From positions 1-64,000 of the IMG/VR virus record IMGVR_UViG_3300044701_003953: DNA of 64,000 bases; one strand, written 5' to 3'. How positions within the stretch are numbered: the first letter of the stretch is position 1; every line of letters begins with the position of its first letter. The position numbers were made by a program, and so were the translations under genes. This document shows positions 56,673 through 58,939 of this stretch, piece after piece. A model generated the notes under the pieces. That model was given only the letters and a program-made list of their open reading frames with translations. It was not told where the DNA came from and did no database searches.

Positions 56673-57896
56673 CTATTTGACTGATTGACGGAACTCAGGA
56701 TAAGCGATGAGTCCACACTCTTCCATGTCAGAACCTTCGTGTTCCTCTTTGGGAGAGACACGCAAGCCCATGACAGCTTTGATGATATACCAAACGATCA
56801 AGCTAGTGATGAACACCCAAGCGAAAATCACGGCAGCACCGTAGGCCTGGGTCAGGAACGATCCGGCTTTGTTGGTCAATGGCACTGCTAACAGTCCCCA
56901 TAGTCCAGCTACACCGTGTACTGAGATAGCACCAACTGGGTCGTCGATTTTGAAAATACGATCTAAAGTCAGGATGGATGCGTAGCAGATCAAACCACCG
57001 ATAGCACCGATTGCCGTAGAGGCGATGGCAGTGCCTGTGAGTGGTTCAGCAGTGATTGACACCAATCCAGCCAAAGCACCGTTTAGCGCCATGGTGATAT
57101 CTGACTTGCCTGTAAACAGTTTACCAGCGACTAATGCCGCTAACAAACCACCCACAGCAGCCATGTTGGTGTTGACGAAGATCTGTGCCACAGCGTTGGC
57201 GTCAGCGAACGTGCTCATCTTCAGTTGTGAGCCACCGTTGAAACCAAACCAACCAAACCACAGGATCCATGTGCCCAGGGCCACCAGTGTGATGTTTGAA
57301 CCTTGGATAGCACGTGGCTTACCATTGGGTCCATACTTGCCTTTTCTAGCACCCAGCAGGATCACACCTGCAAGGGCAGCGGCAGCACCGGCCATGTGTA
57401 CCACGCCTGAACCTGCGAAGTCCAGGAAGCCAGCAGCGTCAAGAGCGCCTTTGCCCCACTTCCAGAAACCTTCCACTGGATAGATGAAGCCAGTCATCAC
57501 TACTGCGAACAACAGGAAGCTCCACAGTTTCATGCGCTCGGCCACTGCTCCCGACACGATGCTCATGGCAGTTGCCACGAACACTACCTGAAACCAGAAG
57601 TCCGACAGTTTGCTGTAGTAAGCGTCGGCAGCGGGTTTGGCATGATCGCCTGCGACCAGGAAATCAAAGCCCGGGATCCACGAACCTTTGGCTCCGCCGT
57701 ACATGATGTTGTAGCCTACGAGTAGGAACATCAAACAAGCGATGCCGTAGAGCGCAAAGTTTTTAGTGATGATCTCTGAGACGTTCTTGGTGCGGACCAT
57801 ACCTGCTTCCAGCATGGTGAAACCTGCGCCCATGAACATGACCATGGCGCCCATGACTAGGAAGTAAAACGTATCTAAGCTATATGCTAGTTCCAT
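56673..57896 (-). CDS. amtB: Ammonium transporter (Amt family)
   Basis: AGFTMLEAG, DFAGSGVVH and ISVHGVAG (twin His), WFGWFGFNGGS, NGALAGLVSIT, IDDPVGA; start trimmed to MELAYSLDT. Confidence 0.93.
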   Translation of the reverse strand: MELAYSLDTFYFLVMGAMVMFMGAGFTMLEAGMVRTKNVSEIITKNFALYGIACLMFLLVGYNIMYGGAKGSWIPGFDFLVAGDHAKPAADAYYSKLSDFWFQVVFVATAMSIVSGAVAERMKLWSFLLFAVVMTGFIYPVEGFWKWGKGALDAAGFLDFAGSGVVHMAGAAAALAGVILLGARKGKYGPNGKPRAIQGSNITLVALGTWILWFGWFGFNGGSQLKMSTFADANAVAQIFVNTNMAAVGGLLAALVAGKLFTGKSDITMALNGALAGLVSITAEPLTGTAIASTAIGAIGGLICYASILTLDRIFKIDDPVGAISVHGVAGLWGLLAVPLTNKAGSFLTQAYGAAVIFAWVFITSLIVWYIIKAVMGLRVSPKEEHEGSDMEECGLIAYPEFRQSVK

Positions 57897-57897
57897 T

Positions 57898-58236
57898 TTA
57901 GATGGCCTCCTTTCCGGACTCACCCGTACGGATACGGATCAGTTCTTCTACTTTGGTTACCCAGATCTTGCCGTCACCAATCTTTCCCGTGCGAGCAGCT
58001 CCTTCGATGGCTTCGATCACTTGTTCAACGATAGAGTCATCCACGATCGCTTCTACTTTTACTTTAGGTAGGAAGTCTACCACATATTCAGCACCGCGAT
58101 ATAGCTCGGTGTGTCCTTTTTGCCGTCCGTAGCCTTTGACTTCAGTGACTGTGATGCCGTTGTGGCCGATGGCCGTAAGGGCTTCACGCACTTCGTCGAG
58201 CTTGAACGGCTTTATGATTGCCGTTACAAGTTTCAT
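57898..58236 (-). CDS. glnK: Nitrogen regulatory protein P-II
   Basis: [25 protein letters not shown] (uridylylated Tyr51), [15 protein letters not shown]; directly upstream of amt. Confidence 0.95.
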
Positions 58237-58246
58237 GACAGTCTCC

Positions 58247-58939
58247 TTAGAAAGTCTTTGAAACTGTGAACACGAAACCGTCTTTGTAGAGGCTCTTGCC
58301 GTTTACTGTGTTGGTAGCTTGGTAATCGCTGGTCAGCTTATTAGTGTACCATTTAGCACCTAGTGTCACACCAGCTACGTCTTTAGTGACGCCGACGTTA
58401 TAGTCTGCGTAATCATTGGTAGACTGGTTGGCTACGTCTGTGTAACCAGCGTGTGCTACTAGCGTGACTGGGCCAACTGGAACGCTAACACCAAGGTCAT
58501 AATAGCGTGTGCCTTTGGTATCGGCTGTGCCAAAATAGTTGTTTAAGCTCTGGCTTACTTTGAAAGAAACAGGACCTTTGCTTAGACCAACATAGGCTTC
58601 GTTAGTATCAAAGTCAGTGGTTGTGCCAGGGTAGTTATAACGAAGGACACCTACATCAATACCGACACCGGCTACTTCGGTTTTATAGCCACCGTAAACA
58701 TCAATCTCTTGACCTTTGCCGCCTGGATAGAAAGCACGAGACACGTTTGATGCCCATGTGCCCACGTAGGCTCCGGATTTGTGATTGTAATCTAGGCCGC
58801 CTTGGATAGCGGGATCTAGTTGCGTCTGGCTGATACCACGGAAGCGATAGTCGCTTGCGCCAGTTAGGTTTGCTGAGATTTCTGCTTGAGCAGATACGGA
58901 TACGGCTAAGATAGCGGCCGCGAGGATAGACTTTTTCAT
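58247..58939 (-). CDS. TorF-family putative outer-membrane porin
   Basis: Signal peptide [54 protein letters not shown]-terminal Phe. Confidence 0.85.

Follow-up and report, generated by a model that had tools for sequence, protein, structure and literature searches.

Can a phage carry a complete ammonium-uptake unit of bacterial type, with a channel for each membrane and a regulator between them, and how would it have come to hold one? The question is raised by a locus in the 64,000 nucleotides (nt) analyzed here, hereafter the window, which form the first 64 kb of a 207.5 kb IMG/VR virus record (IMGVR_UViG_3300044701_003953, G000 below; CheckV completeness 59%). Three adjacent open reading frames (ORFs) occupy positions 56673-58939 on the minus strand, in the order porin, glnK, amt:

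58247-58939, minus strand: TorF/Gcw_chp outer-membrane porin, 230 amino acids (aa) (PF09694, TIGR02001)
57898-58236, minus strand: glnK (PII), 112 aa (PF00543, T-loop alignment)
56673-57896, minus strand: amt, 407 aa, 'marine subtype' ammonium transporter (TIGR03644, AmtB alignment)

A reading made from the letters of the window (the sequence-only reading) had seen in this trio an operon imported whole by a phage. Taking the function, leader control and history proposed below as one reading, we consider it probable that the trio is a genuine auxiliary nutrient-uptake unit of a jumbo myovirus of about 340 kb.

Could bacterial genes have been wrongly joined to a phage contig, through an assembly chimera or host contamination, as the sequence-only reading had asked to be checked? 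All the genes have clear relatives in bacteria, arranged in the same order, and contaminated assemblies make up many of the amt-bearing 'phage' records in databases; in INPHARED, neither this amt nor this porin turned up in a genuine cultured phage, the matches being gut contigs or host-contaminated 'phage' assemblies. The locus itself nevertheless argues strongly the other way. On one side, the trio is flanked by the portal, a gp23-like capsid protein, the baseplate hub and tail genes; on the other, by a GT4 gene, an LpxH-like phosphoesterase, a GIY-YIG endonuclease and radical-SAM/SMC genes. On either side the genes are collinear with those of G002, a related viral contig of 192 kb (major capsid protein 78%, portal 59%, 83 shared ORFs), and these hallmark genes and this collinearity confirm that a phage carries the operon. 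The exact porin protein also occurs on contigs of up to 339,769 bp, and across both junctions the genes follow the same order on a separately assembled contig of 337,740 bp from the Joint Genome Institute (JGI), the one of four large matching contigs whose gene order was read. Logan contigs from two samples match without a single mismatch over 55600-56772 and 58147-59182, spanning both junctions, with per-contig depths of 29-41 that are alike over trio and flanks. GC content at third codon positions and codon usage of the three genes lie within the values seen for the phage as a whole, and the GC content of each viral amt follows that of the phage carrying it. Finally, the trio is kept in three diverged phage genotypes, and the closest relatives of the Amt protein are encoded on viral contigs (75-96% identity), cells reaching at most 66%. 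We therefore regard a chimera as almost certainly not the explanation. The carrier is an uncultured T4-core jumbo myovirus of about 340 kb, whose capsid protein is 66-70% identical to those of the proteobacterial jumbo phages Phosso, Vibrio 2.275.O, the PA5oct group and E. coli A4.

Profile scores bear out the three families and their coordinates. The porin reaches 168 bits against PF09694 (cut-off 24) and 177 bits against TIGR02001 (cut-off 47); it starts with a helix at residues 3-16 ending in AQA, that is, a signal peptide, finishes on a C-terminal Phe, and is modelled by AlphaFold as a 12-stranded beta-barrel (predicted local distance difference test score 94). GlnK, preceded by its own GGAG Shine-Dalgarno sequence in the 10-nt gap after the porin stop, scores 109 bits against PF00543 (cut-off 25). 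Alignment to 1hwu displays its signature motifs TGKIGDGKI (B-loop) and RIRTGE, together with two T-loop residues, the pore plug Arg47 and the uridylylation site Tyr51, the latter already read as intact from the sequence. For amt, the likely start is the ATG at 57896, one base past the glnK stop, as in gene calling on an independent contig, and not the overlapping GTG at 57923. Its product scores 609 bits against TIGR03644 (cut-off 514), 338 against PF00909 (cut-off 23) and 356 against TIGR00836 (cut-off 343); against the E. coli AmtB model it scores 161 bits with a cut-off of 657, which places it in a different subfamily. The alignment covers residues 7-404 of AmtB (1xqe) and Pfam positions 3-399 of 399 without large gaps, and the protein appears full-length for the 11-helix core, as judged from this span rather than from predicted topology. 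Both pore histidines are intact, as the sequence-only reading had held (H167 and H327, aligned to E. coli H168 and H318), and the residues of the NH4+ site, the Phe gate and D160 are found at F106, W147, D159, F219 and S223 (E. coli F107, W148, D160, F215 and S219): all seven AmtB pore and gate residues are kept.

Two viral relatives allowed us to look at selection. Contig L161 keeps the trio with identical spacing (porin 82%, GlnK 93%, Amt 96% identity), as does L160 (porin 78%, GlnK 87%). Against L161, the ratio of nonsynonymous to synonymous substitution rates (dN/dS) is 0.04 for amt, the most conserved gene of the cassette, 0.07 for glnK and 0.08 for the porin; the porin ratio stays at 0.08-0.11 over comparisons, and the full range of 0.04-0.17 across all comparisons indicates strong purifying selection on the three genes. 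A doubt raised with the initial prediction was that the proteins might not work. With three intact genes, their key residues kept and such selection, the unit looks functional.

What would such a unit do? During infection, the phage would install its own outer-membrane channel and inner-membrane Amt, freeing ammonium supply from the host glnK-amtB system that is controlled by NtrC and sigma54. This independence from host Ntr control is suggested because the unit has no sigma54/NtrC promoter: a motif scan of the spacer upstream of the porin found no such motif. (Two matches with two mismatches were dismissed because they lie inside the GT4 coding region.) Phage GlnK would be modified by host GlnD, would sense ATP/ADP and 2-oxoglutarate, and would gate the phage Amt, and possibly the host Amt, matching uptake to assimilation; the nitrogen gained would supply the synthesis of nucleotides and protein that a very large genome demands. 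As in the E. coli AmtB-GlnK complex (PDB 2NUU, 2NS1), the pore, gate and T-loop gating residues are all kept; the phage Amt, which phage GlnK may likewise bind, differs in belonging to the TIGR03644 subfamily.

The sequence-only reading went further and suggested that the phage may reprogram host PII signalling, which we treat as speculation: the 207.5 kb of the record contain no glnD or glnA. In a stronger form of this idea, the cassette chiefly serves to deliver GlnK, which as a PII mimic would redirect nitrogen control in the host (GlnE/glutamine synthetase, NtrB, host AmtB), Amt and the porin being of secondary importance. Being 70-80% identical to gammaproteobacterial PII and retaining all ligand and T-loop motifs, phage GlnK could engage host targets, and viral PII without amt is known (bioRxiv 10.1101/053090). 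That Amt is the most conserved of the three proteins, is always kept with glnK in the clade and is carried alone by other T4-like phages makes this unlikely, in our judgement.

The relatives of the three proteins point to where they came from. The nearest cellular Amts are gammaproteobacterial (57-66% identity), and in Amt trees the viral clade (support 100/100) is nested among gammaproteobacterial metagenome-assembled genomes, with Vibrionaceae next out. Among 401 sampled gammaproteobacterial genomes, the best cellular porin identity is 48%. All six of the best cellular porin matches, and two more, are directly followed by glnK and amt, so that the porin-glnK-amt order that had been called canonical for Proteobacteria is real in Gammaproteobacteria. 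The porin tree groups 8 porins of verified phage context and 58 unlabelled metagenomic proteins in one clade (96), whose sister is a cellular glnK-linked porin (99). The comparison with host homologues proposed earlier thus places both Amt and porin within Gammaproteobacteria; with a gammaproteobacterial donor indicated by both trees, the host is probably gammaproteobacterial too, and most likely an aquatic gammaproteobacterium. Of the proteobacterial host in nitrogen-poor water that had been proposed, it is the host that finds support, whereas nitrogen-poor water is unsupported: the runs holding the sequence are labelled just 'freshwater metagenome', and relatives occur in marine and Tara data.

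Between the small gene upstream and the GT2 gene downstream, the trio is bounded and preceded by the following elements:

59102-59128, minus strand: intrinsic terminator of the upstream small gene, a 12-bp stem then a T-run; 5' boundary of the unit
59010-59038, minus strand: promoter-like AT-rich box, CTGATA-17-TATATT, a weak sigma70-type match
58940-59016, minus strand: structured 5' leader with two hairpins and the Shine-Dalgarno sequence GAAAGG (covariance model R1, 80 bits)
56630-56651, either strand: GC-rich bidirectional terminator, 9-bp, shared with the convergent GT2 gene; 3' boundary of the unit

The last of these is the terminator that had been noticed at the end of the unit. From 5' to 3', the layout is: upstream terminator, 160-nt spacer, porin, 10-nt gap, glnK, 1-nt gap, amt.

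The spacer holds an unexpected element. About 80 nt 5' of the porin ATG are highly conserved although synonymous sites of the porin are saturated. They fold into two hairpins (fold z-score -2.4); a U-A pair closes each of the loops, CAGGAG and CAAGAG, and the invariant form is U-CARGAG-UA. Over 10 distinct sequences, in an alignment that was fitted to the model, 95% of cells are paired and 11 of the 13 pairs show compensatory double changes, a value reached by 0 of 500 shuffles and compared with 29-56% in slid controls; an independent MAFFT alignment of six leader sequences gives 93% paired and compensatory changes in 7/13 pairs. With the covariance model, the leader is detected in all phage cassettes of the clade but that of L001, and 91 bacterial glnK-amt loci gave 0 matches. 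No Rfam 15 family matches it (only sub-threshold matches driven by terminators were returned); in the 401 gammaproteobacterial genomes the exact double-loop motif occurs at control level, with none near glnK; and the stemmed hairpin unit is found nowhere else in G000 or G002. On IMG/VR a relaxed leader pattern proved too loose, its matches (at least 117) being mostly chance. Under our proposal, this RNA, with its Shine-Dalgarno-like CARGAG loops and transcribed from the phage-type AT-rich box, would govern expression of the unit. Ideas for its action include a ribosome standby site, a GGAG-directed nuclease resembling RegB, and a loop-binding protein. Neither RegA nor RegB turned up in the 207.5 kb of the record, from which 41% of the genome is absent, and control genomes also lacked both. 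Loop binding of CsrA type was judged weak, since half of the sequences have no GGA in loop 2.

The leader also bears on how the trio came together. It lies directly 5' of glnK in G002, in G003 and in a third IMG/VR group (contigs up to 289 kb), as well as on Tara and other metagenome scaffolds; in the subclade of the window, the porin sits between leader and glnK. Within the viral Amt clade G003 is basal, the remaining branches not being separated by the tree. The leader-glnK arrangement is thus present in the basal lineage and two others, and leader-porin-glnK only in the subclade of the window. Viral relatives of the porin, which surfaced through a protein word search and contig look-ups (a pattern scan of IMG/VR with the porin gave no match), include homologues at 51-77% identity on phage-like contigs, one of them a 332 kb NCBI record and another a 307 kb contig that encodes rIIB and, as in the window, has GT4 and LpxH-like genes beside the porin. 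Most members of the phage porin clade are solitary, each with its own consensus sigma70 promoter and without glnK-amt, and the cargo 3' of them varies (AhpC/CMD, rubrerythrin or methylase). In G002, a porin (48%) and PstS-glnK-amt are both present, about 185 kb apart. With glnK immediately behind the leader in the basal lineage and in most others, and with a porin clade that is mostly stand-alone, the trio may have been assembled within phages, and the import of an entire operon, as first proposed, is doubtful.

We accordingly propose the following history. A phage would have acquired glnK-amt from Gammaproteobacteria on a single occasion, after which the pair would have shifted from locus to locus in related phages; the TorF porin would be an old resident of the huge-phage lineage, descended from porins heading bacterial glnK-amt operons; and in the subclade of the window the two would have been joined behind the leader. 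On grounds of parsimony, one insertion that put the resident porin after the leader is preferable to two or three precise losses, and the 'bacterial' porin-glnK-amt order may have been rebuilt inside phages. The competing history, capture of the trio en bloc from bacteria with later loss of the porin in other lineages, is less parsimonious but may yet be the true one. Porin-versus-Amt distances were dropped as an argument against co-inheritance, L161 and L160 showing that the porin evolves about 4 times faster. Taken together, we put forward as a tentative proposal, one that could well prove wrong, that the leader is an undescribed phage-specific cis-regulatory RNA of glnK-amt cassettes in aquatic jumbo phages, behind which a resident TorF porin was inserted, convergently rebuilding the porin-glnK-amt order of the host.

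One marine metagenome run (X8) holds a contig that appears to join 56632 to 59454, skipping 2,821 nt with amt, glnK, the porin and the small gene, and with a 26-nt terminator-like hairpin between; just 40 nt match on the shorter side, and we take it as only a hint of an empty site in a marine relative.

The porin could also be unconnected with nitrogen uptake: an independent envelope gene, acting in permeability, receptor masking or superinfection exclusion, and merely co-transcribed with its neighbours. The prevalence of stand-alone porins behind their own promoter and followed by unrelated cargo fits this picture, as does the position of the window's porin next to the envelope genes GT4 and LpxH-like. 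Its synonymous divergence (dS) is 1.4-1.5, against about 0.6 for the adjoining glnK and amt in the same relatives (L161, L160), that is, about 2.5 times higher, which could reflect recombination within the operon or codon constraint. Yet its nearest cellular relatives are specifically the porins linked to glnK-amt, it lies between leader and glnK with a 10-nt gap in three phage genotypes, and an unrelated porin has also been joined to glnK-amt, in L001 and in published PII-1 viruses. We find this explanation decidedly unlikely and prefer a putative uptake role for the porin. In L001, whose Amt is closest to that of the window on full-length comparison (85%) and whose cassette has no leader, this second porin belongs to the Porin_4 family and lies 3' of amt (3559-4524), in a layout resembling the published glnK-amtB-ompL arrangement.

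Other viral contigs add to the range of contexts. A PstS (phosphate-binding) gene lies directly 5' of the cassette in L160 (4122-5117), L161 (1-528) and L002 (6509-7519), giving the orders PstS-porin-glnK-amt in L160 and L161 and PstS-glnK-amt in G002; this suggests a combined phosphorus and nitrogen uptake island in the relatives. No PstS was found in the 207.5 kb of G000. A separate, all-viral clade of 12 marine-subtype Amts without glnK (L009, L011-L016, L020-L024, L029, L033) occurs in T4-like contexts: L022 has a gp15 tail-sheath stabiliser, coproporphyrinogen oxidase and a class II tRNA-synthetase-like gene nearby, and L009 has gp46/47-like genes and IMPDH/GMP reductase. L130, a 103 kb phage-like contig with a stand-alone TorF porin, encodes ribosomal protein S21 (15761-16000), ribonucleotide reductase, glutaredoxin and AhpC/CMD.

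Several points weigh against reading the trio as a phage-controlled ammonium-uptake unit. GlnK falls below the NCBIfam equivalog cut-offs (163 bits against 181 for the GlnK model, 165 against 202 for the GlnB model); as its score cannot fix the subtype, the name rests on linkage to amt across the 1-nt gap, genetic linkage to amt being the operational definition of GlnK. The nearest solved folds of the porin model, KdgM, NanC and VhGalP (TM-score by target 0.61-0.73; KdgM/NanC family), carry acidic sugars, not ammonium. Prediction of an Amt-GlnK complex returned a score of 0.01, which in itself weighs neither for nor against binding. The solved structures that best match Amt (6eu6; 8qj3/8qpf) are Amt domains of longer signalling proteins, as would be expected if it were an ammonium sensor rather than a transporter; with 407 aa and no output domain, the full set of transport residues intact and the cut-offs of the NCBIfam transporter models exceeded, the phage protein is very improbably a sensor. 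Only 59% of the genome could be searched, and no RNA run among the searched runs contains the stretch. Lastly, the box upstream of the leader is promoter-like in sequence, a candidate promoter of uncertain class.

This box contains TATATATA, which has 7 of 8 matches to the T4-late TATAAATA, and relatives carry ATATATAC or ATAAATA at the same place; ATAAATA, the T4 late promoter core, precedes several leader copies. Exact TATAAATA boxes are absent before the trio and are found before structural genes. They are intergenic at 54771 (plus strand), 54819, 46572 and 39905 (all minus strand), and include a divergent pair between a 760-aa gene and the baseplate hub. Genome-wide, TATAAATA is not enriched (6 observed, about 10 expected).

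The genes around the trio deserve a brief description. Directly 5' of the unit, at 59147-59341 on the minus strand, is a gene for a secreted Lys/Ala-rich protein of 64 aa, with a signal peptide and three KKADAKSE-type repeats; it has its own strong terminator, and its similarity to the acid-shock protein Asr is sub-threshold (22 bits, cut-off 50). The 338 kb contig has a gene of 64 aa in the corresponding position, and in L131 an ORF of this length precedes the porin. Envelope-related genes surround the trio: GT2 (55891-56625, plus strand), GT4 (59455-60456, minus strand) and the LpxH-like gene (60526-61365, minus strand), which resembles UDP-2,3-diacylglucosamine hydrolase and matches part of the Pelagibacter phage Mosig at 71% nucleotide identity. 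In L148 (LpxH-like 76%) and L160 too, GT4 and the LpxH-like gene adjoin the porin. A SegE-like homing endonuclease of the GIY-YIG type (61918-62367, minus strand) lies at the edge of a variable island of about 8 kb (55.9-64 kb) that holds the trio, and may be relevant to its mobility; the equivalent slot in G002 measures only about 2.3 kb. Beside the island, from 62846-64000 on to about 69.5 kb of G000, are three or four radical-SAM/SPASM genes and an SMC-like ATPase. Outside the window, an ORF of 4,716 aa (80976-95126 of G000, plus strand) has a counterpart of 1,696 aa in G002, with 36% identity.

How much of this is new? Viral glnK-amt pairs are already known, and the present one is not new in kind. 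A viral PII gene adjoining amt was reported from Tara data in 2016 (Roux et al., bioRxiv 10.1101/053090), and in 2021 viruses with glnK-amtB-ompL and a T4-like contig with Gammaproteobacteria-like glnK-amtB were described, with the same functional idea (Gazitua et al., PMC8115048). In the former, PII-1, an OmpL-type, Flavobacteriales-like porin lies immediately downstream of amtB; the latter, PII-4, lies near gp20/gp23 and has 'no extra genes' (PMC8115048). With the published viral cassettes (P-II-1, P-II-4) the window shares glnK directly 5' of amt, a contig with viral hallmarks, Tyr51 and a terminator after amt; with PII-4 it shares the T4-like context and gammaproteobacterial affinity, and with PII-1 the presence of a porin. 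Here, however, the porin is TorF-type and upstream, and a terminator and a convergent GT2 gene follow amt; the jumbo carrier of about 340 kb, PstS in relatives and the structured leader further set it apart from the cassettes as they were described. Gammaproteobacterial TorF-porin-glnK-amt operons have the same families, order and close spacing, but differ in Amt (57-66%), porin (at most 48%), the phage leader and the missing sigma54/NtrC promoter. In Ostreococcus tauri virus, a host-derived Amt is thought to raise nitrogen uptake of the infected cell (Monier et al. 2017, via PMC8115048); as far as that account goes, this eukaryotic algal virus carries amt alone, with no PII and no porin. The 12-stranded monomeric porins KdgM and NanC, the best structural matches of the porin as modelled, differ from it in sequence (7-15% identity), Pfam family and substrates, which are acidic oligosaccharides. 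We found no mention of TorF/Gcw_chp porins in phages, or tied to glnK-amtB, in the literature searched, and structure and literature searches returned no member of this family with a solved structure or known substrate. What appears to be new is the TorF porin clade spread through huge phages, PstS upstream in relatives, and the phage-specific leader.

Viral glnK-amtB genes have served as an argument that viruses of the ocean direct nitrogen uptake, but the earlier examples were short contigs. The present case can be placed in a near-complete genome, that of a jumbo phage of about 340 kb, and is backed by independent assemblies, by diverged relatives and by clear purifying selection. The function of TorF is unknown even in bacteria, and its link to phages supports a role in the entry of ammonium or nitrogen. 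If the porin was indeed inserted behind the leader, this would indicate that joint expression of an outer-membrane channel with Amt and GlnK has been favoured by selection. Through the conserved leader, it can be tested in concrete terms how a phage may control an auxiliary metabolic operon without relying on the host Ntr system, and it is this RNA, together with the porin clade of huge phages, that is most worth pursuing.

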